Shown here: positions 6,943-48,681 of the stretch, in pieces
Layout of the letters: every line of letters starts with the position of its first letter
Numbering within the stretch: position 1 is the first letter of the stretch
Assembly (NCBI GenBank): GCA_002104905.1
Contig: MCFE01000655.1
Span: 1 to 49,490 of the forward strand
DNA: 49,490 nt
Reading direction: 5' to 3'
Source: Basidiobolus meristosporus CBS 931.73
Taxonomy: Eukaryota > Fungi > Basidiobolomycota
Notes under the pieces: generated by a model
Seen by the model: only the letters and a program-made list of their open reading frames with translations
Told to the model about the DNA's origin: nothing
Database searches by the model: none
Position numbers and translations under genes: made by a program

Positions 6943-9900
6943 ATGTCCGAGAAAGTACAGATAGAAGGAACAAGCGAAAAAGCTGCACCCACTGATGAGC
7001 ATCCTTTACCCGTGGTGCCCGAAGTTAATGCCAACATAGTATCCCGTATTGTGTTTTGGTGGTTAAATTCCCTTATGCTTAAAGGCTACAAACGACCTCT
7101 GGAGAAAGAGGACCTTTATGATTTGGGTGCTATGTATAACGCTGAAAACCTGTCTACCCGATTCGAAGACTCCTGGAGAAACGAACGGCTAAGACCAAAA
7201 CCCTCGTTGTTTCACGCGCTTCATGTTACTTTCGGAAGGCGCTTCTGGCCAGCTGGCATCCTCAAGTTTCTAGGTGATTTAGCACAGACCGTATCACCTT
7301 TGTTTGTCAGAGAAATCACAAACTACGTGAGTGAGTCTGCTCGACATAATGAGGTTCATGGGGTAGGATACGGATTCGGCCTTGCAATCGGCTTACTCTT
7401 AATCCAAATCTTTGGTACGCTCTGTACACACGCTTATTTCCATCTTACCATGACAACTGGTTTCGCTATTCGATCCACACTAATCACGAATATTTACAAA
7501 AAATCGATGATTCTCTCGGGGAAGGCTAGGCAGACATATTCGGCAGGAAAAGTCACCAATATCATGTCAACGGATACCTCTCGTATAGACATGACCTGTG
7601 GATATCTACAAATGCTGTGGCTAAGTCCAATTCAATTAATCATTGTTTTAGGATTGTTGATCGACACTCTGGGCCCGTCAGCTCTGGCAGGCTTTGCTAT
7701 TTTGGTTATTTTCGGCCCACTACAAGGGTATATCATGCGAAAACTCGCAGTATTCAGGAGAAGAGCAGCAGCTGTTACTGATCAAAGAGTGAAGGCAACC
7801 CAGGAGGTTCTTCAAGGTATCAAAGTCATAAAATTCTTTGCCTGGGAGGAGAGTTTCGGCCAAAAATTGTCTGAGCTTCGTAATCAAGAACTCATCAGTG
7901 TGCGGAAGTTGCTTATCATTCGTGCACTTATCTTTTCCGCTGCATTGGTTGTTCCGGTCTTTGCCAGTATTTTATCGTTTGTGGTCTATTACTTGGCTGG
8001 CAATGAGTTAACGCCTGGTGTTGTGTTCTCCTCCGTTGCTCTATTTAATGTACTACGGCTACCCCTGATGCTTTTCCCTGCTATCATTGGCTTCACCGTG
8101 GATGCCAAGGTCTCCCTTGGCCGCATTCAAGAGTTGCTTCTTGCTCCTGAATTAGACACCCTCCCGCCGATTGAACACAGTGCCGATTTTGGTGTACGCG
8201 TTGAAAATGGTAAATTTATGTGGGAGAGTCCTCCACCCGAGGAGGAAGATCCAAAGAAGAAGAAGAGAAGAATGAAGGAAGAGAAGAAGAACAAGAAAAA
8301 GACGAAAACGAAGTCTGTCAAAAATGATTTGAAGCAAGCCGAAAATAGCGACGAAGGAATAACAGTAGAAAATACTATAATTGATGACAAGAACTCGGGC
8401 GAAGCCAAAGACAGCGCGGCACCATTCCTTCGCGATATCAACTTCTCAATTCCAAAAGGAAAGCTTGTGGCGGTAGTTGGATCAGTTGGAAGCGGAAAAA
8501 GCTCTTTACTTAATGCGCTTGTCGGAGAAATGCGGATGGTTGAGGGTAGCATCACATTTGGAGGCCGAGTTGGTTATTGTCCGCAAACCGCCTGGATCCA
8601 GAATGCCACCTTGAAAGATAACATAATCTTCGGTTTGCCGTTCAATGAAGAGAGGTACAAGCGCGTACTGCATGTATGTGCTCTGGAGCGCGATTTGGAG
8701 GTGTTGCCCGGCGGTGACTATACCGAGATTGGTGAACGTGGTATCAATCTATCTGGCGGCCAAAAGCAACGTCTAAATATCGCTCGTGCAGTCTATTTCG
8801 ATAGTGATATCATCTTATTGGATGATCCCCTATCTGCAGTTGATGCACATGTTGGTAAACACTTATTTGACAAGTGTATTGTGGGTGAGTTGGCTGGCAA
8901 GACACGTTTGCTCGTTACTCATCAGCTGCACTATATTCGCCATTGTGACTATGTTCTCTACTTAAACGATGGCAGGATTACAGAGCAAGGCACGTATCAA
9001 GAACTTATGAACAACAACAACTCTTTCGCCAAACTTCTACAAGAATATGGAGGAATTGACGAGGAGGAGGAGGAGGAGGAGGGAGGCGAAAGGGACGCCG
9101 ACCAATCTTCCAATAGCACTATTATCGATGAAAGTCCTAAACCTCCTGTAGTGACTGAGGTGCCTACAAAAGGAGCTGCTGTAGCTGCTGTCCGTGCACC
9201 TGGCTTGATGACTACTGAAGAAAGGTCTACTGGTGCAGTCAATTCAAAGGTGTATATGCTGTACTTCGCCGCTGGTGGTGGCCTTGTTGCCCTATCTGGG
9301 ATTATTGTATTGCTAATCCTGACGCAAGTTGTTCGCGTTGGAAACGATCTGTGGCTGAGCTACTGGTCTGAGGAAAAGTGGGGCCTATCTAAACAGCTCT
9401 ATATGGGTGTTTACGTTGCCTGGGGTGTTGGACAATCTATATTTATGCTCTTCTTTGGTGTAAGTGTGGCCATCTCCGGAATTATGTCAGCAAGAACTCT
9501 TCACAACAACGCAATCGCCAGGGTCTTCCGTGCTCCAATGTCATTTTTTGATACTACACCACTAGGTCGTATCATTAATAGATTTAGCAAGGATATCGAC
9601 TCAATTGATAATTTACTGGCAGATTCATTCCGAATGTTCTCTAACACCTTAGCAACTACACTTGCTACTTTTATTCTAATTTCGGTTATTTTCCCAATGT
9701 TCTTAATACCCCTTGTTCCTCTCCTTGTTATCTACTATTTCGTGCAACTATTCTATAGAGCTACTTCTAGAGAAGTGAAGCGATTGGATTCAATCTCACG
9801 TTCACCTCTTTACGCCCATTTTTCGGAGACTCTAAATGGGCTGGCGACTATTCGTGCTTATCGCGTCCAGGACCGCTTCACTCGAACCAATGAGAAGTTC

Positions 9901-10989
9901 ATGAACGGGAACAATCGCCCTTACTATTTGAGCATTTCGATTCAGCGCTGGCTTGGTGTTCGTCTGGAGACCATTGCGAATATACTTACATTCTTCGCTA
10001 CGGTTTTCGCAGTTCTAGCTCGTGGAAAAGTAGCACCGGGCCAGGTTGGTCTTGTACTCTCATACTCTCTCCAAGTAACCGGTGTGTTCAATTGGTGCGT
10101 ACGACAAGCAGCTGAGGTTGAGACCAATATGAATGCTGTTGAGCGAGTGGACCATTACATTCATAACATAGAATCCGAAGCCGACCTAGTAATTGGGGAT
10201 AGGCGCCCCGAACCCGAGTGGCCTCAAAGAGGAGATATTGAGATCAAAGATCTAGAACTCTCTTATCGTGAAGGCCTTCCGCCAGTGCTCCATGGAATCA
10301 ATCTCAGCATTACAGGTGGTGAGAAGGTTGGCGTAGTGGGGAGAACCGGTGCAGGCAAATCTTCTATCATGATAGCTCTATTCAGAGTGGTTGAAGCTAG
10401 CCGCGGTTCTATTGATATTGATGGCATTGACATCTCTTCTATTGGGCTTCACGATCTTCGTTCCAAACTTGCTATCATTCCACAGGACCCTGTCCTCTTC
10501 ACAGGAACCGTACGCTCAAACCTCGATCCTTTCAACAATCATACCGACCAGGAACTTTGGGACGTACTAGGACGAGCTGATTTGAAAACCTACTTTTCGA
10601 CGCTTCCCAGTGGTTTAGAGTCGGATATTACAGAAGGAGGTGAAAACTTGTCTGCTGGACAACGTCAACTATTATGTCTTGCGCGAGCAATGTTGACACG
10701 CTCTAGAATTGTAATTATGGATGAAGCCACAGCCTCAGTTGATGTCCAGACTGATGCTTTAATCCAAAAGGCCTTGAGAGTCGATTTCGCTCAATGCACC
10801 GTCCTGACCATTGCACATCGCCTAAATACAGTCATCGATTACGACAAGATCTTGGTGCTTGATAATGGCAATGTCAAAGAATTTGACTCTCCCAAGAATC
10901 TGCTGTCAGATGTGAACTCCGCATTCTATTCAATGGTGCAAGAAACGGGACCGGCCAATGCAGCACTTCTAATGTCGCTGGCAAAGTAA
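6943..10989 (+). CDS. ABCC/MRP-family full-length ABC transporter, YOR1-like, without TMD0; intronless
   Basis: Single 1348-aa ORF with TMD-NBD-TMD-NBD layout. Walker A motifs GSVGSGKS and GRTGAGKS, signatures LSGGQ and LSAGQ, Walker B motifs IILLDD and IVIMDE, plus the ABCC-typical FFDTTPLGRIINRFSKD and IIPQDPVLF. Confidence 0.95.
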   Translation: MSEKVQIEGTSEKAAPTDEHPLPVVPEVNANIVSRIVFWWLNSLMLKGYKRPLEKEDLYDLGAMYNAENLSTRFEDSWRNERLRPKPSLFHALHVTFGRRFWPAGILKFLGDLAQTVSPLFVREITNYVSESARHNEVHGVGYGFGLAIGLLLIQIFGTLCTHAYFHLTMTTGFAIRSTLITNIYKKSMILSGKARQTYSAGKVTNIMSTDTSRIDMTCGYLQMLWLSPIQLIIVLGLLIDTLGPSALAGFAILVIFGPLQGYIMRKLAVFRRRAAAVTDQRVKATQEVLQGIKVIKFFAWEESFGQKLSELRNQELISVRKLLIIRALIFSAALVVPVFASILSFVVYYLAGNELTPGVVFSSVALFNVLRLPLMLFPAIIGFTVDAKVSLGRIQELLLAPELDTLPPIEHSADFGVRVENGKFMWESPPPEEEDPKKKKRRMKEEKKNKKKTKTKSVKNDLKQAENSDEGITVENTIIDDKNSGEAKDSAAPFLRDINFSIPKGKLVAVVGSVGSGKSSLLNALVGEMRMVEGSITFGGRVGYCPQTAWIQNATLKDNIIFGLPFNEERYKRVLHVCALERDLEVLPGGDYTEIGERGINLSGGQKQRLNIARAVYFDSDIILLDDPLSAVDAHVGKHLFDKCIVGELAGKTRLLVTHQLHYIRHCDYVLYLNDGRITEQGTYQELMNNNNSFAKLLQEYGGIDEEEEEEEGGERDADQSSNSTIIDESPKPPVVTEVPTKGAAVAAVRAPGLMTTEERSTGAVNSKVYMLYFAAGGGLVALSGIIVLLILTQVVRVGNDLWLSYWSEEKWGLSKQLYMGVYVAWGVGQSIFMLFFGVSVAISGIMSARTLHNNAIARVFRAPMSFFDTTPLGRIINRFSKDIDSIDNLLADSFRMFSNTLATTLATFILISVIFPMFLIPLVPLLVIYYFVQLFYRATSREVKRLDSISRSPLYAHFSETLNGLATIRAYRVQDRFTRTNEKFMNGNNRPYYLSISIQRWLGVRLETIANILTFFATVFAVLARGKVAPGQVGLVLSYSLQVTGVFNWCVRQAAEVETNMNAVERVDHYIHNIESEADLVIGDRRPEPEWPQRGDIEIKDLELSYREGLPPVLHGINLSITGGEKVGVVGRTGAGKSSIMIALFRVVEASRGSIDIDGIDISSIGLHDLRSKLAIIPQDPVLFTGTVRSNLDPFNNHTDQELWDVLGRADLKTYFSTLPSGLESDITEGGENLSAGQRQLLCLARAMLTRSRIVIMDEATASVDVQTDALIQKALRVDFAQCTVLTIAHRLNTVIDYDKILVLDNGNVKEFDSPKNLLSDVNSAFYSMVQETGPANAALLMSLAK
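9061..9081 (+). repeat. (GAG)7 encoding poly-Glu in the ABC transporter linker
   Basis: GAGGAGGAGGAGGAGGAGGAG, in frame after NBD1. Confidence 0.85.
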
Positions 10990-14434: not shown

Positions 14435-17400
14435 ATGAAGTTGAAGGATATTGATCGTACTGCTACTGTTGCTTGGGGGCCGCATCAAAGCCAGACGTAC
14501 CTTGCCACTGGTACTATGTCTGGTGCTTTAGATGCCTCGTTCTCCAACAAATCCGATTTAGAGTTATTTAAGCTTGATTTCACTGAGGATTCCATCGCTG
14601 AGACTTGGAAACCAAAGGCCGTCCTCAACAGTAATGCAAGGTATGTGAACAAGGATCAACCAAAATCCTATTCTTTTCTTTCTGGTTCCTAACTAGGTGG
14701 TAGATTTAATCGGATCGCTTGGGGTGCCATTGCAGCAGATAAACCACACGGCATTATTGCTGGTGGTATGGAAAACGGAGAGCTAGCACTATGGAATGCG
14801 GCTAGCATACTTGATGACTCCAAGTAAGCGCTATCACCTGAGGTTATTTCGGTTTATGAGTAGCCCATACTAATATCCGTTTAGTTCTGAAGACGCACTT
14901 ATCATGAGTAACACCAGCCACACGGGTAGCGTTCGAGGATTAGATTTCAATCCTTTCCAACAAAACCTTCTGGCTTCAGCTGCTGGTAACGGCGAGGTAA
15001 GTCGGCTAGATGGTTTATTTAACCTGTCCAACATAACCTCAACTATGAAATTATCATCTCTAGATCTTCATCTGGGATCTTACAAACCCTACGAAGCCAT
15101 ATTCTCCTGGTCCTCGCTCCCAAAGACTCGATGACATTACTTCCTTGTCATGGAACAATCAAGTGCAACATATTTTAGCCACCTCATCTACGACCGGCTA
15201 CACTGTTGTTTGGGATTTGAAGAACAGACGTGAAGTAATGCATATGGCATATCCGGGTGCATCCATGGGAATGGGTGGCAGAGGAGGAATTACCGCTGTT
15301 GCATGGAACCCTGACAATGTAATTGATATGTCTACCAGCTCTATGCCAACTAGGCAATTAACATTTACGTCAATACAATGTATAGGCAACTCAATTGGTT
15401 ACCGCCTCTGAAGATGATCACAACCCAGTAATCATGATGTGGGATCTTAGAAATGCCCACGCACCAGAGAAGGTAACCAACAATCACAACCAGTACCAAA
15501 CAACTCCGAGTAACCAGTGATTTGGATTGAATTTAGATCTTATCGGGCCATTCCAAGGGAATCCTTTCCTTGTCGTGGTGCAAGATGGACTCTGACCTGC
15601 TTTTAAGTACCGGAAAAGATTGTAGAACTCTCTGCTGGAATCCACGTGTTGGCGAAGTTGTTGGAGAGGTACATAGGGTATGAAGCATTGAATGATTGGT
15701 CATTAGTTCTAACTATATGTGAAGCTTCCATCAAGTGCTAATTGGACATTTGACGTCCAATGGTGTCCCAAGAATCCTAACCTTTTGAGTACCGCATCGT
15801 TTGATGGAAAGGTAATCGTAGTAGATATCTAATCCGCTCTTCCGCTTGATGTTAAAGCCAACCGTGCGCCAATTCTAGGTCAACGTGTTTTCCCTTCAAT
15901 CTGGTGTTGACGACAACAATACCGCCGAACCCAGCCCTTCGCAGGCCCAAAATGATGATCCCTTCAACGCCCAGAATTACACCAATACTACCAACTCATC
16001 GTTCTCGTTGAAGCAGGCCCCCAAGTGGTTGAGACCCCCAGTTGGCGGTACTTTTTCTTTTGGTGGAAAGCTTGTTTCCTTTGGAAACAATTCGCAAACA
16101 AACTCCCCGAATACCACTGTGTCTATCTCAACTGTGGTCACCGAGCCAGAGATTGTAAAGCGTTCTCAAGAGCTTGAGGCCGCTTTGGAATCCAACAATT
16201 TGCAGGAGTTCTGTGAAGCAAGAGCCAACTCGACCACCGATAAGGATGGTCTGGACAGCTGGAGAATTCTGAGAATTCTATTTGAATCGGACGCCAGAGA
16301 TCGTTTGATAAGTCATCTCGGATTCAAAAAAGACGAGCTCGTTGCGCAGATCGCCGAGAAAATGAGCAAGCTTGAGGTGGACGAGAAGAAGGCACCAGAA
16401 GGCGAAGAATCGAGCGCTGCACTTGATACCGAGATCCCTACCGAAGAGTCTGCAAATGAAGAATCATCACCAAAGAGTGAGAATGTCTCCGAGCTTTTCA
16501 GCGATAGCGACGATAAGGATTCTCTTGACTTCTTCGTTCAACAACCAGAGCAAGCCGAATCCCCCGCAGAGGAAGCCATGGGCTCCGTTTCAAAGCAGAA
16601 CCAGCTGGTATCTCTGCCAAGATTGCCTTTCAAGTTCAACCCTGACGAGAACTCGGACGTCGACAGATTGATCACTCGCTCCATTACCTTGGGCGATTTC
16701 GAATCCGCGGTCAACCTCTGCCTCAAGAGTGATCGTCTTTCTGACGCACTGGTTCTGGCTATTTGCGGTGGTGGTGACTTGCTTGTCCGTACACAGCAGG
16801 CGTATTTTGAACAAAAGAGCCAGTCCACCCCATACATTCGTATCCTTCGTTCTGTGATATCTGGTGATCTTGATGATATTGTGGAGAATGCGGATATTGG
16901 CGAATGGGATGAAATCCTTGCCATCCTGTGCACCTACTCTAGTTCTGAGAACTTCGCTGACCTCTGCGAGAAGCTAGGATCGCGACTAGAGGCCGAGTGG
17001 CACAAGACCGCAGGCCGTGGTGATGTTTCTGTTACTGATGATGTCAGACATCACGCTACCGTATGCTACCTTGCCTCCGGCAATATCAGCAAAGTATTGG
17101 GCATTTGGTTAGCCCAAGAGTCTGAGGCTGAGGCCGCAGCTCTTGCTAGTCACAGTGACTCGCGTGGCCAGATCCTTCAGGATTTCATGGAGAAGCTAGC
17201 TGTTCTCCAGAAGGCCATTGACCAGAACGAGACCCCGGTTGGCTCCGAGCGTGATATGTCGCAGCTCTATCGTAGATATCTGGATTATGCCGAGATCTTG
17301 ATTACTCAAGGGCAGCTAGCCACAGCCGTGAAGTATCTGAGCTATGTTCCGTCTGAGGTTCAGGAAGGAGAAATGAATGAAGCCGAGAAGTGCTCCATTA

Positions 17401-18698
17401 TCAAGGATCGAATTTACAACTCCGGCATCGGGGCTGATATTTTATCACCTCCAGTGTTTCCCTTCGAATTCGTTCCTGTTGGTCTCGAAGGTCAGCCCCC
17501 TCAATCTCAACCGGAACCATCGGTATATCAGGAAAGCAGCCAGCAAGGAGCAGCAATTCCTAACAACTCGTATCCTACTGCCTCACAACCTCAACAATAC
17601 TACAATCAGTACGACACTCAAACTGGATATCAACAGGAGGCTCAAGCCTCTAGCTATCCGGCCGTGAACACCTACCCGACCCAGGTTCAGCAGAATTACT
17701 ACACCCCTTCAGGTGCTAGCCCTTACGGAGGCTACCAACAGCCCAGTGTTCCCGAGTACAACGTCCCCAATACCTTCGGTAATACTAACTATGCTGCCCA
17801 AACTCCTTCCGCACCGCCTGTGGCTCCACCCTCCCAACTGAGAAACACTCCGGCTTGGAATGATCCTCCCATGGCGAGTGTTGCTGCGGCGAAGCAGCGT
17901 GCTCCCACTCCTAAAGTAGCGCCAATCACTTCACCTTTCCCCAATGCTGTGTCTACCCCATCATCACCCAACGCTGGGTATGCGGCACCTCCTATGGGCA
18001 AGCCAATGCCACCCCCTCCGCGACCCGGCAGCGGCCTTGGTGCCAACTCTCAGGCCGGCTCTCCTAATGCTAACGCTATCCCCAAGGTTCCTCAGCCCAA
18101 CACTCAATTCATCCCCAACTCGTATAGCGGAGTGACCCCCAACAACACTACACCTATGCCTAACTACGGGGCCGGATATGCCGCCTCTAACTCACCAGTT
18201 AACCAATACCAGCAGGGAATTCAACGGGGACCAAGCCCAATGATTCCACAGCCCCCTAATACTCTTCCTTCCACCACTTCCCAACTTGCCGGTAAACCTG
18301 TGTCCAAGCCAAGCTCTCCAGCCCCCAAAGAGCCAGCTGCACCAAAATATCCCCCTGGAGATAGAAGCCATATCCCATCCGCTCACATACCTATTTACCA
18401 GAAGCTCAGCGGCGAATTCCAGCGCGTTCGCCAAGGCGCTCTCCCCAACCAAAGAAGAATGCTGGACGACGTGGAAAAGCGGTTGAATCTGCTCTTTGAT
18501 GCCTTGAACTTGGAAACCCTACCACAAGACATTACCGACAGAATGCTTACCCTTACTCAGGCACTGGAAAAGCACGACTTCCATACAGCCCAACAGATTC
18601 ACCTTGATTTGGTTACCACCAAATTTGCCATCGTTGGTCAGTGGATGGTTGGAGTGAAGCGTTTGATCGAGTTGGTGAGATCTCACTCAGGAATGTAA
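14435..18698 (+). CDS. SEC31: COPII coat protein Sec31 (WD40 propeller, ACE1 region, Pro-rich linker, C-terminal helical domain)
   Basis: N-terminus [14 protein letters not shown]...[17 protein letters not shown] exons include [22 protein letters not shown] and [12 protein letters not shown]. Also [23 protein letters not shown], a Pro/Gln-rich region and C-terminal [11 protein letters not shown]...WMVGVKRLI. Many short introns lie in the 5' part, followed by a last exon of about 2.8 kb. Confidence 0.96.
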
Positions 18699-19738: not shown

Positions 19739-20724
19739 ACCGCATTCATGCCCTCGATTTTGCAAACCCCATGATATTCCCTTCCCCTTAGCCCTTCACA
19801 CGGTACCGTTGAATTGATCTTCATTGAGTTGGCGGGTCCACCAGGCTGGTGAGTGTTGCATCATCACGAAACCATCCAGTTTCTGTAGATGGATATCGTA
19901 CATCATACGTATGCACCTGATGTTGGCCAGGAATGGTTTGATTGTGACTAGTGGCTTCACATTGAAGAGAGCACTAATATTGTCCCACGACCTGACATGA
20001 AGTGATGGCGACTCCTAACTAGATCGCGGCATAGGTAACATTGGGTTTTCACGGGGCCCAGTGTTCGAAACCGAGCCATCAGAGTAGGCGGATTGGAAGG
20101 GTTGACAGGCTGGCTACCAGAAGCACTAGGCCCACGGCAGCGAGTATCTAACGGGCTCCGTGGAGACATGCTTCTGCTGCTCCGTCTGGATTTCAAATCA
20201 CGTTGCTGGCCCGCTACAGCTCTGACACAGCCCCGAAACTAAGGATGCAATGTGCGTAGGGCGGTAAATATGTGGTTTCTATCGACTCGATTAATTTGAG
20301 AGTAACAACCATATCTGCCTGGGCTGCCTTGAGTGGTGCGTATCTCAATTGATTAATTAAATGCCACCAATGAAACTGCTGGGCAAGAAATTGTCTATCT
20401 GGAAATCAATTCCAGTTCGGCACACTCCTGCATCGACCGGTCAGGTAAATGGATGCTCAACAATTGCACAGAATAGGCAGAAGCATTCCATTCTCAGGAA
20501 AGAATCGTAGATTAAAGTTTAAGTGGCGTGCCGGACGTAGAATAAGGGGACCGCGGAATTCTTTAAATCTTGGCCTCTGCCAATCTGACAGATCGAATAA
20601 TCTGGCCAATTTGGCTCTGCCAACGCCGTTACGTAAGGCATTTCCTGTAGACTCCTCCAAGCCCTCGCCCCGCCCCCGCCACCACTACCATTGAAGCCCA
20701 CCTGAGATAGAAATCCCACCCACC

Positions 20725-22427
20725 ATGACCTTCGAGACGATCACTCGGCACATCGATGAATCCTTGACCAACGAAAACTGGTTCACCCTCAACAAATTGA
20801 TCAAAGCCGATCTCATAGCACTGTGCCAAGAGCGAGGTAGAGGCTACGGCAGCATTTGAATCGAGCGTATCATTCTAACCATCTCCACCTCAGGCTTGCC
20901 TACAGAGGGCTCAAAGGAATCCCTGATCCTGGCGTTGATGGAATGGGTAACCTGGTGGATGGCCAACGTCTCTCAGAACATTGAATCTCACCCATTGCTC
21001 TCTTGTAGAAACTGGGAGTAAAGCCGATCCCCGCCCCAGCCACCGCTCGCCTGTCCAACCTCAACACGTCGCCAGGACATAAGAACATCACCTCCGTGTA
21101 CAACACAATGCTGCTAGAGGATGATTCATGGGATTCCATTGGGGAAATTCCCTACGGACAGTTGAAGTTCGGGAAGAAGCTTGGCTCCGGCGGGTTCAAG
21201 GATTGCTTCGCCGGCACCTACGGGGAGGTGAGTACTGCAAACAACCGTCCCGTACGGTGAGCCCTAGCTAACCATCTTTTTTAGGATCCTGTGGCCATTG
21301 GAGAGCTTCGCATTTCTACGGACTTCAGCCCGGAGGACTTTGCTGATATCAAGCACGAAATCAGCGTGCTAAAGTAATGCTTCTCAGCAGACCACCCCTT
21401 TCGTTGAGTCCGACTAACCCGAAGTCTTGGACCCCTAGGCAACTGAGACATGAGAACATAGTCAGGTTCATTGGCGTATGCACCGACGTGAAGCATCTGT
21501 GTATTGTGACCGAGCTGTGTGAGCACGGGGATCTCTTCGATTTCATGCGGAAATCCAAGAAGCCCCCGTTCAGTCAACAGGTAAGGGCAAGCATTCCCAT
21601 TGGGTCGGGTTTCAGCGATTAATGATGGATGATGCGCAGCTCATGTACATGCATGACATCGCCTTTGGTGTAACCTATCTCCATACGAGACGGCCCAGCA
21701 TCATACATCGAGTAAGTGGACTTTATTCCGACTCCAATGAGTGTTCCTTGTATTCATCCATGCGGGCTTGACTCTAGGACATGAAATCGATGAACATCCT
21801 GGTAATTCTAAATGCTGGCGTGGACGGTTCCTCACGTCTCTAACTCCTTGCTAGATTAGTGCCGATTATAGAGCAAAGATCAACGACTTCGGACTGGCCC
21901 GAATCCGGCCGCGGCTAAACACCCTGGTCCATACCCAGTGCGGGACACCGAACTGGCAAGGTATGGCGAGACCCAGCAGACTGTCTTTGCTCCAGAGACT
22001 AACATTACTCCCTCTAGCACCCGAGTTCTGGACCGCCAACCCAAGCTACACCGAAAAGGTAGCCCATTCTCGGTAGCATCAAAATCCAAGGTTTCCTCTA
22101 ACCACTCTGATCCATCAGGTTGATGTCTATGCCTGTGGCCTAATCTTCTGGGAGATTCTACAATGGGCGGCCGAGCCATATCCGTACCATGACCTCACCG
22201 AGCACCAGCTGTATATCCAAGGTAGGCAGCACTGGATTGTGATTCAAACCACGCCCTAGCTAATCCGCTTTACAGTGAGAGACAAGGGGGTACGCCCGTC
22301 ACTGGCCAAGCTGAAGAAGTATCCACAATCGTTACTGAACCTGATTCAGGATATGTGGGCCCACGAGCCAAGCCAACGGCCCTCGATGAGCCATGTCCTG
22401 GAATCGTTGCAGGAGTATCTGTCCTGA
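20725..22427 (+). CDS. SAP-domain plus TKL-like protein kinase, 11 exons
   Basis: Ten GT-AG introns give an open frame: SAP-like LNKLIKADLIALCQERGLPTEGSKESLILALMEW, then KLGSGGFKDCFAGTYGE-DPVAIGEL, HEISVLKQLRHENIVRFIG, IIHR-DMKSMNIL, KINDFGLAR, CGTPNWQ-APEFW, VDVYACGLIFWE and MWAHEPSQRPSM. Confidence 0.9.
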
Positions 22428-22969
22428 AGAGCGATAGGAGTTCGGTGAGTGAGGAGGAGGGGGCGAGGACCTAGATTTCCACTCAACATCGAGTTCCCAA
22501 AGGCCACTTTGTTCTTGGGATTCATTTTCATTTTAGTTTCACTTGATTGCCTATGATCTCTCAAATGTATATCACCCAGTCACGCTATTTCACAAACACA
22601 TATTGATAAACTGATAGATTTACCCCACCCTTCGTGCATGTTTCCTATGAACCAAGGTCACATCCAGATTTCGCCCGCTCAATCTCTCCCGAGTAATTTT
22701 CAGAACCCTGATGAACTTCGCCGCCACGTTTGGGTGGATTTCAAATCCAAATGCAAGCAACCACCGAGTGCGTGCCCACCCTCATGTTCCATCCCATCCC
22801 TTCACTGCCAACTCCTTCCGCAGTGCCCTTGGAACTGCCAGATATGGAAGGCGTCACAGGATGGATACCAAATTAGGTCCTTCACGAGACAAAATTGGTA
22901 ACTTCATCAGCATCGCAACCATCATTGGCCCTTCGCTACGAGGTACAATCACCAAGAACATCAACAAAA

Positions 22970-22977
22970 TCACGTGA
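22970..22977. promoter_or_regulatory. Palindromic E-box (TCACGTGA) upstream of the YjjX-like gene
   Basis: Perfect palindrome about 70 nt upstream of ATG 23049. CACGTG is the established bHLH core (Cbf1/Pho4 type). Function here is unproven. Confidence 0.3.
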
Positions 22978-23048
22978 CCAGAGGGGACCATTGTAAACAA
23001 AAGCACAGCGGGCACCCAAGCCTCGAGACCAACATTCACGCCCAAAAA

Positions 23049-23901
23049 ATGTCTCCACCAGTATCTGAAGAGCTACACGTCGCCGTCGGATCGAAGAATC
23101 CCACCAAAGTGAACGCCGCCAAGAGAGTTCTGCAGCATTACTTCCCCGACAAGAACATCCACGTCCACATGCTGAGCGTTCCTTCGGGAGTTGCCGACCA
23201 GCCTATGTCAGGTACGCCCCTACCTGTTCCCCCTGGACACGAGACACGGAGTCGTTTCCAGTCCAGTCAACTAAGCGTTCGATTTTTTCTAGATGAGGAA
23301 ACCATCTTGGGTGCCAAGAATCGCGCCAAAGCGGCCATGGAGATGTCGGAGGCCGATTGTACTTACGGTATGTGAAACTCTTCTCGCGACCAGGACAGGA
23401 GCGCCCTCCGGTGGTGGTTGACCAGTTTACTCACCAACCTATCATACTGCAGCCATCGGCATTGAAGGAGGTGTTTGCGAAATGGGCGGGGATTATTTCC
23501 AAACCGGATGGGCCGCAGTCGTCGACAAGAAGGTAAGTTGGATTAAGCGGTGTCTACGGGACGAGGATTCGCTTGCTAACCCAGCATGACAGGGCGATAT
23601 CGGCGTCGGTAGCGGTGGTCGTTTCCAAATCTCCAACAAAATCATCGCCCAGCTCAAGTCGGGCAGAGAGATGGGCCCGGTCATGGACGAACTATCCGGT
23701 ATCGACGATGTTCGGTCCACACTGGGAGTGATTGGTAAGTCACATGCCTTCGGTCGATACCATCATGATCCGTTCGCTAACTTTTTCTCTGGTTGACCAG
23801 GTATTTACACCAAGGGGGCCTTGGATAGATCCGATTCGAACACCGAGGCTCTTTACCTTGCCTTTGCCAAATTCGTTTCCGACCCTGTGTACTGGGACTA
23901 G
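23049..23901 (+). CDS. YjjX/DUF84-family non-canonical purine NTP phosphatase (ITP/XTPase), 5 exons
   Basis: Introns at 23212-23292, 23368-23452, 23533-23592 and 23735-23800. The product reads VAVGSKNPTKVNA...SVPSGVADQPMS-DEETILGAKNRA...AIGIEGGV...GWAAVVDKK-GDIGVGSGG...GREMGPVMDELSG...LGVIG-IYTKGALDRS, which are YjjX-family motifs. Confidence 0.88.
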
Positions 23902-26172: not shown

Positions 26173-29100
26173 TTACGATTCCTTCATCTCCTCCTCTATC
26201 CTCTTGTAGATTTTCTTCGGGGACTTGGACAGTGGTCTGTACTTCGCTCCTTTGCGGAGATGCCATGCATGAACTACCCATTGCACCAGATTTGGAAACA
26301 CATACTTCTCGGCTACCATAGATACAGCAAAGTTCAAGGATGCAACGAATAGCAAATTGAGCCGATAGGAGAGAGGAACGCCTAGCAAATCCAGGATGTT
26401 CATGATCACCTTGCTAGGATACATCACAATATACACCGAGAAGATAAGAAGGATAAAGATGGTGATGACGAAAGGGCCTGCGTATCGAAATCGAAGAATC
26501 AGCGTTTGGGTGGAATGGTCGGGGTTGAAGTGTGGCTTGAACTTACGATTACTGAACATTGATCGCCGGTACGGGGGCCCGACATTGAACACAATCGCGG
26601 TTAGGATGTATTGGAAGCATGAGATCAAGAACAAGCTCGTATTTTCAAAGTTCCGAACATTCTTCGCCGAGGTGAATTCTGTCGGGGGGAGATACCTGGA
26701 TGCGGGCTCAAGTTAGGAAATCAACGGCTACCTCGATCGTGTTATGTATGCAGTGAATCGTCCAACTAACCAGGTCTTGGTTTGCACCAAACGGAATACG
26801 CTCACCTGCACCAGAGCGTGGATGAATATATGTCCAATAAGCGATGTGATCACTTTCTTGGAGACTAGATTCGCGGTGGGGCGCTTCCGATGGATCTTGG
26901 GATAGGATGCGGTTCTCGCCATGAAGACTGCTATGGGTAATATGACAAACAGATCGATGAATAAGAATTGGAAATCCCCCAAAGTGGAGTCAAATCCATA
27001 CAACAAGCCGACACTGGTGAATTGGATTAGACTGTACAGCGCCATGTACTTGAAGCATCCAAAACTAGTCACCAGAGCGGCTCTGCCCTCGCGGATCACC
27101 TGCAGTACACAGCCGATATCTGTGGAGCGACTGGTGAAGGGTGCTGCGACAGAGGCTTCCGCCTCAGAAAGAGATATGCCCACATCGGCTGCTTTCAGAG
27201 CGCCGCAATCGTTGGCTCCATCACCACAAAACCCAACGCAGTAATTGATCCCTTGCAGCTTCTCGACCAGTTCATGCTTCTCGTCAGGTGACATCCGAGC
27301 GAAGATCTGACCCTTTATAAGCATACGTTGAAACGTTTCAAGTGGGGCGTAGTCTACCATCCAACGGAATATCTCTCCAGTAATCGCCAGTGCATAGTTC
27401 TCCCCCAAGAACGACGTTCTATACGGTGTATTTCGATGCTCAACCGGCCTCAAGGTTATTGCATCAAGTGTACTACGCTTGCCGTCGATATTCTCCCAAG
27501 AAATGATTGAGCGAGGTGTGTTTGAGGAGCCTTGAGTAAAGCGTGGGACATATACCTCTGCCTCGGGGTGGACGAGTCCGCACTCTTTGGAGACACTTAT
27601 GGCGGTCAAAACATTATCGCCGGTACACATGATTTGCCTGATGGAAGCGTTGGAGAGTGTATTGATGACTGATGCAGTGGTTGGCTTGAGCTTGTTTTCA
27701 AAAATAATAAATCCAATAAATTGCAGCTCCGCCTCAACTTGTTCGCGCTTAATTCTTTGAGCCTTCAACCAGTTCAACGATGGAAGCGATTTGGCAGCAC
27801 ATGCGATTACACGATACCCATGATGAGTATATTGTTGAAGGATCTCATGGTAGTCATGGGGTAAAGACTCGGGCCTACATATATCGATCATAACTTCAGG
27901 TGCGCCCTTGACAAATATCTCCATGGAGGTGCTACCAAGTCGTTTCACTATTACGCTCATACGTCGAAGTGAGGAGATGAACTCGAAACAACGAATAACT
28001 CCAAGCTCAAGAAAGCTGTTAGCTGGCTCATCATCACTCTTTGTAAGCATTGCGTCCAGGTCAAATCGCTTGCCGCCCGGTGGTCTAACTACAGTAGGCA
28101 CTAGGCCAGATGTTGAATTTCGATCTTTCTTGGGTGGCTTTCCCAAAGCTTCACCGAGAGTGGGGCCAGTTCCTTCTTCTAGTATCCAGCGGGTGAATTC
28201 AAACATCTTTAGATCCAGCGGGTCACCCATCAACTCCCCATCAATAAGCTTCAACGAGTGGCAAGTGGTCATGGCGTGCAGGATTTGTAAATCTCCCCAA
28301 ACCTCGTTGGTTGAAGATTGAAGATTCTCCACTGATCGATGCAATTCAGAAAACAGCCGACTCTGTTGATCAATTACTTGGACCCCCAATACATCCAACC
28401 CATCCTCGGTTAGAGTCCCCGTTTTGTCGAAACACATGGCATTGATTTTACCACACACATTTACTCGAGAAGGGCTAATGCAAAAGATTCCGCATTTTCG
28501 CAGCCGGGAGATCGCAAACGTGGTTCCTATTGACATAGTGGCAGGCAGGGCCGGTGGAACAACGATCGTAATGAGGTCGAGAGCACGCACAATGATCTTC
28601 TCCCAATGAACCTACAGTTACATCAAGTTCACGATTAGTAGTTGGAGCATGAAAAGTTCTATAAAGACCAAGCCCGTCACTTACGCCCAGTTTGATGAAG
28701 TTCACCACACTCATCATAAAGCCAACAGCCGCTATATTCAGCACATGTTAGTCGCAGTGTTACTCGAATCAATGCACAACTACCGATTTACCTATGCATG
28801 CTAGAACGCCAATGAACCGAAAAGAATCTCGGTAAAACGCAAACTTGTTTGGCTTTGGGAACAGCATTGAACGGACAAGTGCACCTTTGGTGGTATTGAA
28901 TCCGGTTCTAACGACCAGGGCAATAGCCTTACCGGCAAGACTTGATTGACGGGTATTTGCATCCGACCCTGCTCTCACTCGGATGATTTTCGTCCCAGAG
29001 AATAAGAAATATTTGGCAAGGCTGGGATGGACATTGGAAGTCGAGAGATTCATATCTACCAACGCTGAATTGACAATGGGAATTTTTGAAACTGGGACGC

Positions 29101-30986
29101 TCTCGCCTAAAATACAAGAGCTGAGTATGAATGGTGCTGTGTTTTTACGATAGAAAGGTTTGGATCTCGAAATGTACCTGTAAGCATACTTTCATTAACG
29201 ATACAGTCGCCATCCAACAAAACACCGTCGCATGGAAAGTTCACGAATTCGTTAGTGTTCACCTCAAATACATCACCTGGAACCAGATCTTCTGATGAGA
29301 TCAACTTCCCTTTGAATCCGAATGGTAAGTCGATGAGTATGACCCGTAGCAATTGAAGCTTAGACTTCCCGGTACTCACAATGATTGTTTCGATAAACTT
29401 TAACGTCACAAACGAACCGAGACATTTCGCTCATTCTCCGCGCGTTCTGCACAACATTGAGGTTGAGTTAGACTGTCTTTAGGCTTGAATCCGTGACTGG
29501 TATAAATACCTTGCGCGTCTCAACCAGTGTCGTTATAATGGATGTTGCCGAGATAATAAAGATACAGACGGCGTAGTAATAATAATCATCAAGCATCCAT
29601 AGGGTAACACTGAATATTTGAAACACGTAGAACGGGTGTAAAACCTCAAAATGGGTGAGTAAAGTATACTTGGTATGCGTATAAAAAGTGAAAACACACC
29701 TCGTCCGTCAAAAGTTGCATAACAGGCCTTTCTTTGATATCAATAACGTTGTCTCCATACACGAGCTTTCGCTCGTTCAATTGATCCCGGGTCAACCCCC
29801 GCTTACAGCCATTGACAGTTACCCACGCAGTGTCCTTCCAGTGGCTGGATAGCATACAGACTTGGTTAGTGAGAGACTTGCTCGGAATGTACTAGTAAGA
29901 CTAACCTGTTTTGAACAAATTTTTGAAGAAGGGGATGGAAAATAAACCGAATGTATTTGTAATCAAAATAGTTTAACTGTGGTAGGCTTTTGTCAGGAAC
30001 CTAGTAGAGAGGGCCGTAAAGGATGCCTTAGCAGCAGCATATTGGAAGAATGCCTGTATGCTCCTTACCCCAGGGTTGCATACGAATACACTTCCCAGAG
30101 TTCCACCGTAATATTTCCGATTAATCTTTTCGATAGTCAAGTCGCCCCATTCGTTCTGTGCACAGTAGGCAATTGTCTGGACATTAGCAGTGTACTGAAC
30201 GAATGTGAAAATTTCACGTACCTCAACAGCAAGCCACTCTGCAGAATCAAGATCACACGTTTCAGCAGTCACATATATCCAGAAGCGAGGAACCCACCGA
30301 CCAACAAGGGCCAATACGCCCAATGTAATGACGCAGAACGCATGGTACAAGTAAGTCCAAGCTTTAAGCGACCGGTAACCCGTAATAACAATCCTTAAAT
30401 CCTCCTCTTCCAAAACGATCTCTTGCTCATAAGGCAAGCGCAGGTTACTTTCCGGGTACGAAGCTCTACTGGCGGAACCGTTCTCTATTGGAAGAGATGC
30501 TGGTTGGATATTATTACGGGCCTCCAAAGAAGACGTATCAGAACACTCCTCCTCCGAGCCGGAGGAATCTTCAAGTCGGTGCTCGATTTCACCCTCGCCT
30601 CGGCTATTCTCTGCTCCACGCCTGTGAAAGTTCGAAGAAAAACTCAACGGTAAAGAGGTATCGCTCTGTGCGGCCAATAGAGAAAAGTGTTTGATCGATT
30701 GTGTAGGAGTAGGGGATGTACTAGTCAACCTTGGACTAATAAGTGGCGTGTGCGAATTTCTACGACTTCTGGGTCTTGAAGTGTATGTCTCAATAGGAGC
30801 CATGAGACTCAGGGAAGAACCCTGCAGCTCGGGCCCATTCTCGTGTCTTGATTTCCTTGAAGCAGACACCACGATGCCATCAGTTACTGTGATTTCCTCA
30901 AGGCCAGGCGAGCTATGTTGCAGGTCTCTTGTATCATATATATCCTGGTATTCAAGGTCCGACTCCGAAGGATTTGTAGTGCCCAT
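26173..30986 (-). CDS. YPK9: P5B-type ATPase (YPK9/ATP13A2-like), multi-exon; the 5' end may extend to about 31100 or further
   Basis: Motifs: PPALP, phosphorylation site [80 protein letters not shown] and VNESMLTGE-type A-domain exon. N-terminal P5-ATPase segment [12 protein letters not shown]. The frame stays open upstream to an acceptor near 31100. Confidence 0.93.
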
Positions 30987-31774
30987 ACCAAAACTGTGTG
31001 GATCAAAGCCAGAGTGCTCAAGTAGCAAGCTCGAGCCAATATTCTTTAGAAAACGAACGTTATGAGAGGCCGAAAGAGTGTTCGTCTGTGTAACTCCTGA
31101 GTTATCAAAGAGTAACAGGGATGATTAATATCGCAGAGGATTAGTAGGAAGTATATCCAATCAAGTCGATTTGGATCGCTATTGGACTGCATTCAGTTAG
31201 AAACGAACACAAATAATACGGATCTATGAGGGAATTGGCCAAATGCGCACAACGTAGCCGACGCAAAAGTCGGATTCCACACGGAAATATGGAGCATGTA
31301 TAAATAGCTCCATTTGATGAGAGGTAACAGGAGAACACTATGCTGATGTGTTGGGCTGTGCACCATAGCGTGTGGCTTGAAACCATCCTGAACTCTTTGT
31401 TCCTATTCGATTTCGGCGCCGAATCCTGATATATTCAATACAACAAAGTCATAATGTGTTGCGTTGTATCAGGTGATGCCAAAGCTTAAAATTGATTGCC
31501 TCTAGATAGGTAGGATCGTAGACAACTGATAAGGAAATGATACTAATTCTCACGGGAACTCCCATACGTACAAACCAAGCTAGGAGTGCATTTAGTAAGA
31601 ATCTATGTTTCAAGTATGGTGTGCAGAATGTAGACTGGCAGTCGAATTTTATAGTATATTTCATTCAAAAAAGGCACTTGCAATTGCCAAAGTTTGTGAT
31701 TACTAGGCATATATAGGAGTGGACTCGAAAACAACCACATTGTAATAACATGAGTAAATGATATGGAAACAGGA

Positions 31775-44698: not shown

Positions 44699-47600
44699 CT
44701 CCCACTCAGCTAAATGTTCATACAGACTAGTCCCAATTTTGACCTAAGATATTCAAACTTGTCTCTAGCTAATGGTTTGGTAAATATGTCTGCAGTCATT
44801 TCATCTGTAGGACAGTAAACTAAGCTAACTAAGTTATTCTCTATAGCTTCATGTATGAAATGATGTCTAATATCTATGTGCTTGGTTCTAGCATGAAAAG
44901 TTGGATTTCTACCTAATTGTATACATCCTTGATTATCTTGAAATAAAGTAATAGGCATTTTTTGACATAGGCCTAAATCTGTAAACAGCTTTCTTAACCA
45001 CATTGCTTCTTTTGTAGCTTCACAGGCTGCCATATACTCTGCCTCTGTGGTGGAAAGTGCTACAGTTGGTTGCTTTCTTGAGTTCCATGAAATTGCTCCT
45101 TTACAGTAAAGAAAGGTGTATCCTGTGGTGGATCTTCTGTCTTCTAAATTTTGTCCCCAATCAGCATCAGAGTATCCCACCAGATCCTGTTCTGAATCCT
45201 TATAAGTGTATCTTAAGCAGATATCAGCAGTTCCTTTTAGGTATCCAAAAATCCGCTTAACTGCTGCAATATGATCAGATCCATAATTCTGATTATGTTG
45301 GCTGACAACTCCCACTGAATATGAGATATCTGGACGTGTTCCAAGCATGATATACATCAGACTGCCAACCATAGATTGATAAGGAAAGTCAGGGCTTTCA
45401 GATGGCACCAAGCTCTCTTGATTTGGTTGAGTTTTGACCAAGTTAAGGTTTGTCTCCATTGGGGTAGCTGCCGGTTTACAGTCTTCCATTTTGTACTTCT
45501 TTAGTATATCTTGAATATACTTGGATTGGCTTAGGGTGATAGTCTGGGTACTTCTGTCTATGGAGAACTTAATCCCTAAGTAGTAACTAAGTTCTCCTAG
45601 ATTGGACATCTTGAACTCCTTAGATAGGCTGGATTTAGTCTCTTCCAATGTTTCTAGGTTATTGGTGGCCATAATAAGATCATCCACATGTAGAGCTAAT
45701 AGAACTGGATTTGCTCTATCTGGCTTATAGTATATACTATAGTCAGCATTACTCCTTTTGAAACTCAAAGATTCCCAATAAGAATCTATCTTGCAATTCC
45801 AGGCTCTTGGTGATTGTTTGAGACCATATAGTGACTTTTTAAGCTTGCAGACCAAATGGGGGTTATCTTGGTCAGCAAACCCATCAGGCTGGTCCATATA
45901 CACGTCCTCATCAAGTTCCCCATTTAAAAATGCAGTTTTTACATCCATTTGATGAATAAAAAACTTATATTTGGCTGCAATAGCCAATATTAATCTGATG
46001 AAATTAAACTTGGCTACCAGTGCAAAGGTCTCAGTGTAGTCAAGTCCTTTTGTATGAGAGTATCCTTTGGCTACAAGTCTTGCTTTGTATCTTTCAATTG
46101 TGCCATCAGCCTTGTATTTTGTCTTGAAGACCCATCTGCATCCAATTGATTTTTGGTTGATTGGTAATTTGACTAAGTCCCAAATTTGATTTTCCATTAG
46201 GGCCTAATATTCCTCAGTCATTGCAGATCTCCAAAACTTTGTCTGAAGGCTATTTAGGGCCACTTTTACAGTCTGGGGTTCATCAATATGGACTAAATAG
46301 GCATAGGATAAGTTTATACCCTCATTGATATTGTGATTTGGGCTATTTCTTGTCCAATTGGATCTCCGGGCATTTGATACTGGAATGATCACTTCTGGGA
46401 TATTCTTGGGCACTGGTTCTGGCTGAACCATAGTTGTAGAGTCCTCTGGAGTGAAAAAATTTTCATTGTTTTGCTCTGATTCAATCCTGACAATTGATGG
46501 ACTTAGGATCAGATTTTTGTCATCATCTGATGTCATTTTTTGTGAAAATTTTGAATTTTCATCAAACAACACATCCCTGGAATTGGTCAGCTTCTTTGAT
46601 TTGGTATTGTAGAGTCTGTATGCCTTACTCTCATTGCAGTAGCCCAAAAATATGCATTTTACACTTTTTGGCTCAAATTTTGACTGATTTCCGGCCAGTT
46701 TTTTGGCATATGCTGTACACCCAAATATTCTAAGATGTTCTGCACTTGGTCTGTGTCCATACCATGCTTCAAATGGAGTAGAATCACAAAGTATTCTGTT
46801 ATAACTCCTATTTTTAAGGTATACAGCAGTGGCAACTGATTCCACCCAAAAATCATAGTGATAATTTTTGATCATGGATCATAGATCTTGCCATATCAAT
46901 TATTGATCTGTTAGCTTGTTCTGCTACTCCATTTTGCTGTGGGGAGTATGGTACAGTAGTCTCTTGCTTTATCCCATGAATTTTGCAGACGTGGATGAAG
47001 AGTTTTGAGGTATATTCTCCACTATTGTCTGAGTGTCATTTTTCTTGATTTTTTCACATGGTTCTCTCTCCACCATGGCTTTAAGCTCCCATGAACTTAG
47101 ACAGAGGCTTCTTCCTTTCTCTCCATGAAGTAGACCCACATGTATCTTGTATAATCATCAATAAAAGTGATTAAATACTTCATCCCACCTAAGGATAAAT
47201 TTTGCATAGGTCCACACAGGTCTGAGTGAATTAGATCTAATTTTCCTTAGTTTTGATTAACCCAGAGCTCTTGAACGGTTGTCTGGCTTGTCTCCCATAT
47301 ATGCAGGCTTCACAGTGCTCCAAATTAGCTGGGGATCAGTTTTCACTCCAGAAATTAGCTGATCTTTGATCATTTTACACAAATAATCAAAATTGACTGT
47401 GTCCCAAATCTCCTGTGCCAAAGCATTGGTGTTTCTTTACTTTAAGTTTACTTATATTGGCTTCCAAGATATGATGGAATATAAGTCAACTTGTATAGAT
47501 TCTGTATCTCTGATGCGCAAAGCAATATGGGCACCATTTTGATCAGTGATCCTGCATCCAGAATTGTCAAAACTGAAACTGAGTCCTTCTGCTGTGGCCT

Positions 47601-48681
47601 TGCTTACAGAGAGTAGGTTCTTGGCTATTTCTGGTACACAAAGTACTTCTTTAAAGGTCAGTGTATGGCTTCCTTCACTGCTTCTAAGGTTTGCTTGGAT
47701 AGTTTCTTCTCCCACTGCATCAAGTGTTCTATTGTCACCCATGAGAACCTTCTTAATTGGAATTTCTTGATATTGGGTAAAAAGTCCTTTTTGGTGTGTA
47801 AAGTGTTGAGATGCTTCAGAGTCAATATTCCACGTCTGAGAATCCTTGTTTGTGGTCATATTTAGTGCAGATATGAATAGTCTATCTTCAGTTGTTGCAG
47901 CATTTCCATATTCAGGCTCCTTTTGCTGATTATCTTTCTTTTTGAGACACCAGTCTGATGTGTGTCCTTTCCTTTTGCAGTAGTTGCAAAATAGGTTGCT
48001 GTTGCCTTTGTAGGGTCTTGGGTCCCTCCTTTGTTGGTTATCATTGCTTATTAAAGCATTTTCTTCTTCCTTCTTATTGGCACTTGATTTCCTTAATTCT
48101 TCATCCAGGAGTCTTCCATATATGTAATTTAAGGTCAAATCTTCAGTTCTGGACTCTAGGGCTGATACAAGGCCTTGAAACTTGTCTGTAAGACTATTCA
48201 GGATGGTAACTATCACATCCTCATCAGTAGTTGGTACACCCACAGATTCCATTTCATCTACCAGCAGGGTAATTCTGTTAATTAGATTTTTCATTTCTTC
48301 TCCTGGCAGCATCTTTGCAGTAGAGAATTTTTGTCTCAGATATATTTTCTTAGCAGCTGAACATGACTGGTAGGTGTCTTCTAATGCCTTCCAGGCATTC
48401 TTTGCCGTTTTTGCTCTTGAGCATTGAATTAGCAATTTGTCTTTAACATTAAGGCAAATGCAGTTGAAAGCACTTTGTTCTTTCTTCTGGTACTTTAAGG
48501 CTGCCTCTCCCATGTTTTAAGGAGGGCATTCTTCTCCCATGACAATATCCCAAAGGCCTCTTTCTTGTAGCAGCATCTTCATCTTCACCTTCCAAACTTG
48601 GTAGTTAGATCCATCCAACTTTTCAGCAGAGGGAAAAATTTCAGTAATAGCAGTAGTAGACATTGCAGAGAGTGACAGCTT

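Follow-up and report, generated by a model that had tools for sequence, protein, structure and literature searches.

The window, by which we mean the whole 49,490-nt stretch of Basidiobolus meristosporus CBS 931.73 DNA that was analysed, carries a kinase gene at 20725-22427 on the + strand, with 11 exons encoding a 370-aa product. Upstream of it, an uninterrupted 1,348-aa ORF at 6943-10989 (+ strand) codes for an ABC transporter of full size (two ABC_membrane and two ABC_tran domains); beside the kinase gene with its ten introns, this lack of introns is unusual. A 937-aa ORF at 15885-18698 (+ strand) has a C-terminal SRA1-type domain (3.1e-13) and no Pfam match in its remainder. Directly downstream of the kinase gene lies a fragment of an NTPase_I-T (DUF84) gene (22974-23375, + strand) and, farther downstream, a P5-type cation ATPase (26728-31028, - strand); no functional link of either to the kinase is evident. 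The AT-rich scaffold end (GC 0.37-0.38) contains Ty1/copia-type LTR retrotransposon ORFs at 44710-48513 on the - strand (RVT_2, 5.6e-80; Retrotran_gag_2, 7.4e-36; Pol_BBD).

The kinase gene model was read from 20400-22800 in all three forward frames. The ten introns are all of the GT-AG type and 53-66 nt long, and most contain a CTRAY branch-point-like motif. The joined model is identical, letter for letter over 370 aa, to a database protein (P0030) that NCBI names 'kinase-like protein [Basidiobolus meristosporus CBS 931.73]' (lineage Basidiobolomycota) and that belongs to a 90% cluster of two member sequences. The features of the gene are the following:

20725-22427, + strand: whole coding region, with GT-AG introns and a frame-consistent translation; the product is P0030
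20725-20836, 20894-20946, 21009-21227 and 21285-21373, + strand: exons 1-4
21439-21580, 21640-21711, 21778-21801 and 21855-21960, + strand: exons 5-8
22018-22058, 22119-22221 and 22276-22427, + strand: exons 9-11
20788-20946, + strand: SAP domain (Pfam PF02037), residues 22-55, interrupted by intron 1 (20837-20893)
20947-21161, + strand: linker, residues 56-106, following intron 2 (20947-21008) and carrying a proline-rich family motif
21162-22409, + strand: kinase domain of TKL type (Pfam), residues 107-365, exons 3-11
21183-21200, + strand: glycine loop GSGGFK, read directly; Lys119 stands at the third-glycine position, at the start of strand beta-2
21198-21200, + strand: codon of Lys119, within GSGGFK
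21228-21284, + strand: intron 3, 57 nt, GTGAGT...TTTTAG, with a branch-point-like CTAAC at 21268; it separates beta-2 from beta-3
21291-21308, + strand: beta-3 motif VAIGEL, read directly; Gly134 replaces the canonical VAIK lysine
21300-21302, + strand: codon of Gly134 (GGA), inside exon 4
21357-21359, + strand: alpha-C Glu153, kept in 40 of 40 members of the clade described below; in the model it lies in helix 144-159
21706-21795, + strand: catalytic loop HRDMKSMN, His228-Asn235, split by intron 6 (21712-21777); HRD itself is 21706-21711 plus 21778-21780
21885-21893, + strand: DFG, Asp248-Phe-Gly, kept in 40 of 40 clade members
21960 plus 22018-22025, + strand: APE, Ala273-Pro-Glu275, the Ala codon being split by intron 8 (21961-22017)

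Pfam and PDB searches made exon by exon returned 'kinase' only; phmmer with exon 3 then led to full-length database proteins. The coordinates that an initial annotation of this DNA had given for intron 3 were found to be correct. Unspliced ORF fragments from orthologues (P0001, P0002, P0005, P0009, P0010, P0012 and P0022) run past a donor at the corresponding position, and two of them (P0012 and P0022) continue into '...VAIGELR'; the position of the intron and the exon downstream of it are therefore conserved. As VAIGEL lies wholly within exon 4 and the intron contains no VAIK-coding piece, no splice choice yields VAIK, and alternative splicing restoring this motif was rejected. An artefact of the gene model or the assembly, with a real mRNA that encodes VAIK, was likewise rejected on codon, exon and cluster evidence and has a negligible probability: the GGA codon of Gly134 would need two base changes to become a lysine codon, the motif is internal to its exon with no alternative exon in the 57-nt intron, and the same motif recurs across more than 110 independent clusters, some of them transcript-type contigs. 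Transcript-type support was obtained from orthologues. A Paraphelidium member (P0142) bears a Trinity-style transcript name, and two Logan contigs (L001 and L002, of 1,369 and 1,424 bases) hold whole uninterrupted ORFs of 389 and 369 aa with the same motifs; no poly(A) tail was seen on these two contigs. The record names of Glomeromycotina orthologues carry 'CDS:10', which suggests about 10 coding exons in these genes.

The product combines a SAP domain, a linker and a kinase domain. The SAP domain, already recognized in the initial annotation, scored above the Pfam threshold (PF02037, E 1.6e-7, 31.2 bits for a cut-off of 23.9) and corresponds to the 35-residue helix-extended-helix motif of SAP-domain proteins of the SAF-A/B, Acinus and PIAS type. 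In an AlphaFold2 model derived from an alignment of 66 family sequences (mean pLDDT 82.8, pTM 0.73), it forms two helices (residues 27-36 and 45-58) in a block with pLDDT of 92-97. The linker is mostly of low confidence in the model, with pLDDT below 50 at residues 60-80. Its proline-rich motif has the consensus PVPAPSTPxL, in which P63, P65, P68 and L70 are near-invariant in an alignment of 66 full-length family members (alignment A1), and includes a possible Ser/Thr-Pro phosphosite. The Basidiobolus linker (from 21024-21038, residues 61-65) reads PIPAPATARL, with A-T-A where the family has S-T-P. The kinase domain was matched by both PK_Tyr_Ser-Thr (residues 107-365; 2.5e-52, 178.2 bits) and Pkinase (residues 109-364; 3.8e-51, 174.4 bits) and ends 5 residues before the C-terminus of the protein. 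A Pfam scan of the 370-aa protein detected the SAP and kinase domains only, and no C-terminal WNK/OSR1-type domain. No nuclear localisation signal is evident in this protein; by analogy with other SAP-domain proteins, the SAP module probably directs the kinase to DNA, chromatin or a partner. No description of a SAP-kinase fusion was found in the literature searched.

The kinase domain belongs to the TKL group and has a Raf/CTR1-like fold, in agreement with the TKL-like character first assigned to it. Among PDB sequences, CTR1 was the best single-domain match (2.6e-43), followed by B-Raf, FGFR4, Fes and TNNI3K, and no WNK was present among the best 60 of 2,578 matches of the whole protein. The N-lobe alone (residues 98-165) matched B-Raf, Src and C-Raf, and its best 60 PDB matches likewise include no WNK. 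A search by structure also placed CTR1 first (Z 31.0, rmsd 2.5, 261 aligned residues, 33% identity); the next 49 entries were all TK or TKL kinases, Foldseek agreed, and the best 50 structural entries included no WNK. CTR1 is thus the closest solved relative by both sequence and structure among the best matches listed. Neighbours in the ESM Atlas were plant STY46-like and EDR1/CTR1-type clusters, TNNI3K, RIPK2 and Mos, and the Mucor, Rhizopus and Paraphelidium orthologues are named 'TKL protein kinase' in databases. The protein shares with CTR1/EDR1/Raf-like MAP3Ks the HRDxKSxN catalytic loop and a P+1 loop of the GTPxWxAPE type. It differs from these kinases in that they have GxGxFG and VAVK, as well as large N-terminal regulatory regions and no SAP domain.

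The main peculiarity of this domain is the position of its lysine. Direct reading confirmed both halves of the exchange reported initially: glycine in place of the beta-3 lysine in VAIGEL, and a lysine just after the glycine-rich loop in GSGGFK. Gly134 is paired with the lysine of VAVK (CTR1) and of VAIK (EGFR) in HMMER alignments. In the AlphaFold2 model, beta-1 spans residues 107-115, beta-2 119-126, beta-3 129-136 and helix alpha-C 144-159, so that Lys119 opens beta-2 and Gly134 lies within beta-3. The other catalytic motifs (HRD, DFG and APE), said to be intact, were all read at their coordinates, and HRDMKSMN (residues 228-235) is the HRDxKxxN form of Ser/Thr-type kinases. The alpha-C glutamate, which usually forms a salt bridge with the catalytic lysine, is kept as Glu153.

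The exchange is not confined to Basidiobolus. The exon-3 phmmer search gave 28 cluster representatives, and those of them that were read and extend across the loop carry GSGGFKDC. A word search with the full-length protein P0027 listed at least 120 clusters, from Mucoromycotina, Mortierellomycotina, Glomeromycotina, Kickxellomycotina, Zoopagomycotina, Entomophthoromycotina and Basidiobolus. In a larger set (122 sequences, each of 250 aa or more), the third-glycine position is a lysine in 120 of 121 relatives, the sole exception being an unrelated repeat protein (P0020), and the beta-3 position is glycine in 114 of 118 relatives and lysine in none. In alignment A1, Lys119 (66/66), Glu153 and DFG are invariant, and Gly134, HRD, Lys232 and Asn235 are conserved at 90% or more. 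Six relatives (P0086, P0093, P0104, P0112, P0132 and P0126) have a lysine one position after the beta-3 site (VAIGKLR, VAVAKFK); this may be a partial reversion or neutral. Since these sequences read VAIGK or VAVAK, and since some kinases tolerate loss of the beta-3 lysine, one could consider an active enzyme in which Lys119 is not the substitute, catalysis being lysine-independent or relying on another basic residue such as this beta-3+1 lysine. We consider this improbable. Only 6 members of about 120 have the beta-3+1 lysine, and all six retain the loop lysine; from strand geometry the +1 side chain should face away from the site; and, Lys119 apart, no invariant basic residue near the ATP site is specific to the clade. 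The beta-3+1 lysine was rejected as the functional lysine because it is rare and always accompanied by Lys119.

To delimit the family, a word search was made with the aphelid protein P0142. It retrieved divergent proteins from Paraphelidium and Amoeboaphelidium, several metagenomic or transcript contigs, a second Calcarisporiella paralogue, and a single basidiomycete match, from Atractiella rhizophila. E values dropped from about 1e-51 to 1e-41, and the matches below the drop were mostly ordinary protist and plant TKLs. Above the drop, the full-length proteins aligned over the loop all combine a loop lysine with G, A or S at beta-3, except P0152 and P0154. The first (E 2.1e-69) has the canonical G and K and was placed among the outgroups; the second has I and A at the two trait positions and a loop region unlike a glycine loop, and was omitted from the tree. 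Below the drop, nearly every protein has G, A or S in the loop and lysine at beta-3; the exceptions are P0164, a fragment with gaps at both trait positions, and P0244, a partial family member carrying GAGGFKDC.

A tree was then computed by quick search under LG+C20+F+G4 on 261 columns, after both trait columns had been removed. It contained TKL groups only: 40 clade members and 34 TKL-type outgroups, with STY17-like and CTR1-named proteins among the latter. The proteins with the exchange form one side of a single branch (SH-aLRT 100, length 1.09) located inside canonical TKLs, and one change of state is therefore sufficient. The loop position is lysine in 40/40 clade members and G, A or S in 34/34 outgroups, whereas the beta-3 position is G (35), A (3) or S (2) in the 40 clade members and lysine in all 34 outgroups. 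The presence of the loop lysine and of the beta-3 lysine thus separate clade from outgroups as perfectly anticorrelated states, with no exception. By these counts, the exchanged arrangement is a family trait and not a chance occurrence, and the tree indicates a single origin of the family among canonical TKLs; the family is old. The clade comprises Mucoromycota, Zoopagomycota, Basidiobolus, aphelids and one basidiomycete.

The SAP module is conserved across the family, aphelid members included. A profile of the N-terminal 58 residues matched aphelid members and others (P0146, 3.7e-13; P0147, 3.1e-12; P0144, 2e-13; P0140, 8.6e-11). As the SAP module and the exchanged kinase are common to the sampled aphelid and core subclades, an ancestral SAP-plus-kinase architecture is suggested. 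The Atractiella rhizophila protein (P0153, Basidiomycota) reads GSGGFKDV, with Ala at beta-3, and has no detectable SAP module; the N-terminal profile gave no match in it. It groups with the second Calcarisporiella paralogue and is the only Dikarya member of the clade among the matches listed; retention in one lineage, transfer or contamination could each explain its presence. Residue 121 (21204-21206), an adenine-contact position, sits two residues after the loop lysine. It is Cys in 27 of 40 clade members (the core family), and Val in the aphelid-type members and in 32 of 34 outgroups. The cysteine reads in the alignment as a second clade-specific change beside the ATP site.

The resemblance to WNK kinases was then considered. 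Lys119 occupies the third-glycine position of GxGxxG, which we take to be the position of the catalytic lysine of WNK1. The two also share the lack of a catalytic lysine in beta-3 and the retention of the alpha-C glutamate, HRD and the catalytic asparagine. WNK kinases carry DLG, at the chloride-binding site, in place of DFG, and have C-terminal autoinhibitory or CCT-like domains. They belong to another kinase group and have a cysteine at beta-3 instead of the glycine found here, and DLG where this protein has DFG. Unlike WNKs, the protein is a 370-aa kinase with an N-terminal SAP domain and no autoinhibitory or CCT-like C-terminal region, and nothing in it suggests chloride sensing. A divergent member or sister of the WNKs, with a beta-2 lysine that was inherited rather than convergent, would account for the shared lysine position and for the non-lysine residue followed by Glu-Leu at beta-3, and the LHTRxPxIIHRD stretch around the catalytic loop resembles that of WNK1. 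This origin is nevertheless very improbable. WNKs are absent from the best 50 structural entries and from the best 60 PDB sequence matches of either the whole protein or the N-lobe, the closest neighbours of the clade are the canonical TKLs inside which it nests, and databases name the Mucor and Rhizopus orthologues TKL. WNK membership fails because the nearest relatives are TKLs, because the motif is DFG rather than the DLG of WNKs, and because the protein has no C-terminal WNK/OSR1-type domain. Independence from WNKs, for which nesting had been considered in the initial annotation, is supported by the match rankings and by the position of the clade among canonical TKLs.

The WNK-type arrangement itself was recognized correctly, with Lys119 in beta-2 and Gly134 in beta-3: the catalytic lysine of WNK1 is located in strand beta-2 and not in beta-3 (PMC13686953). 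The VAIK lysine of POMK/SGK196 has also migrated to beta-2, where it is needed for activity (PMC10211241). Both WNK1 and POMK use the beta-2 lysine, and mutating it abolishes activity (PMC10211241; PMC13686953). POMK resembles the present protein in its relocated beta-2 lysine and differs in that its HRD and DFG aspartates have also been relocated and that it phosphorylates a sugar, whereas HRD and DFG are canonical here, on a TKL fold.

A pseudokinase is defined in sequence terms by loss of the VAIK lysine, the HRD aspartate or the DFG aspartate, together with lost catalysis. In the present family, the VAIK lysine is lost, the aspartates of HRD and DFG persist in 40/40 clade members and Lys119 is invariant; judged by loss of the VAIK lysine alone, the protein would count as a pseudokinase. 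KSR, a TKL relative, is a pseudokinase with an altered beta-3 and was found among the PDB matches of exon 5. The protein could accordingly be a true pseudokinase that serves as a scaffold or regulates allosterically, perhaps on chromatin by way of the SAP domain, the loop lysine having another role such as a nucleotide-independent structural one. The absence of the canonical lysine from every member is compatible with this view. However, Glu153, His228, Arg229, Asp230, Lys232, Asn235, Asp248, Phe249, Gly250, Pro274 and Glu275 are each present in 40/40 clade members, from aphelids to Mucoromycota, with the same conservation in the 34 canonical outgroups; this would be unexpected without selection for catalysis. 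Ala273 of APE is present in 39/40 clade members. The replacement lysine occupies the site of the WNK1 catalytic lysine, and the beta-3 residue is always small (G, A or S), as required to admit a neighbouring side chain. Furthermore, WNK1 and POMK both catalyse with a lysine in beta-2 (PMC13686953; PMC10211241). A true pseudokinase is unlikely, and the conservation pattern is that expected of an enzyme under selection for catalysis rather than of a decayed pseudokinase.

We therefore favour, with a probability of roughly 0.65, an active TKL Ser/Thr kinase that would use Lys119 and would represent a convergent solution of the WNK/POMK style. This reading is preferred because all other catalytic residues are fixed from aphelids to Mucoromycota, the beta-3 residue is small and there is precedent for a beta-2 lysine. 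In the ancestor of the clade, the lysine that anchors ATP would have left beta-3, where Gly134 now stands, for the third-glycine position in the loop (Lys119). The small beta-3 residue would leave space for the side chain of Lys119, which may then reach the alpha- and beta-phosphates of ATP and pair with the invariant alpha-C Glu153. The remaining machinery (Asp230, Lys232, Asn235 and Asp248) would work as usual, and the WNK/POMK solution would have been arrived at independently on a TKL scaffold. A point against this reading is that replacement of the third glycine by lysine could give a stiffer glycine loop. The N-terminal SAP helix-linker-helix, joined through the disordered proline-rich linker, probably targets the kinase to DNA, chromatin or a partner. 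We infer catalytic activity, the function of Lys119 and the binding target of the SAP domain from these comparisons. A wider proposal, to which we give slightly better than even odds, is that the family represents a third independent and ancient origin of a beta-2 lysine, pre-dating the split between aphelids and the other sampled fungi, in which Lys119 would do the catalytic work of an active kinase that its SAP domain tethers to nucleic acid or chromatin, and in which the emptied beta-3 position might form a regulatory pocket for an anion or small ligand, as in WNKs and unlike canonical TKLs.

The family is known to databases and functionally undescribed. As stated in the initial annotation, its members are already in databases, under the names 'kinase-like protein' or 'TKL protein kinase' and without a mechanism; the statement that similar kinases occur in other fungi holds for early-diverging fungi, to which aphelids are to be added, and does not hold for Dikarya, except for the one Atractiella protein. 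No description of the family was found in the literature searched, which is not proof of absence elsewhere. The beta-2 catalytic lysine has been treated as a hallmark of WNKs, with POMK as the sole other example in the review consulted. If the present reading is true, a strictly conserved TKL clade with the exchange would make the beta-2 lysine a repeatable evolutionary route, and as sister TKLs retain the canonical state, the clade would constitute a clean natural experiment on what relocation of the lysine buys. Pseudokinase calls based on sequence would then wrongly score these proteins as dead. Members of the clade occur in Mucorales, among them agents of mucormycosis, and in arbuscular mycorrhizal fungi, Mortierella, Kickxellomycotina, Basidiobolus and aphelids, and the fusion of a SAP domain to the kinase suggests an unstudied component of nuclear signalling in these organisms, one that is nearly missing from Dikarya among the matches listed.
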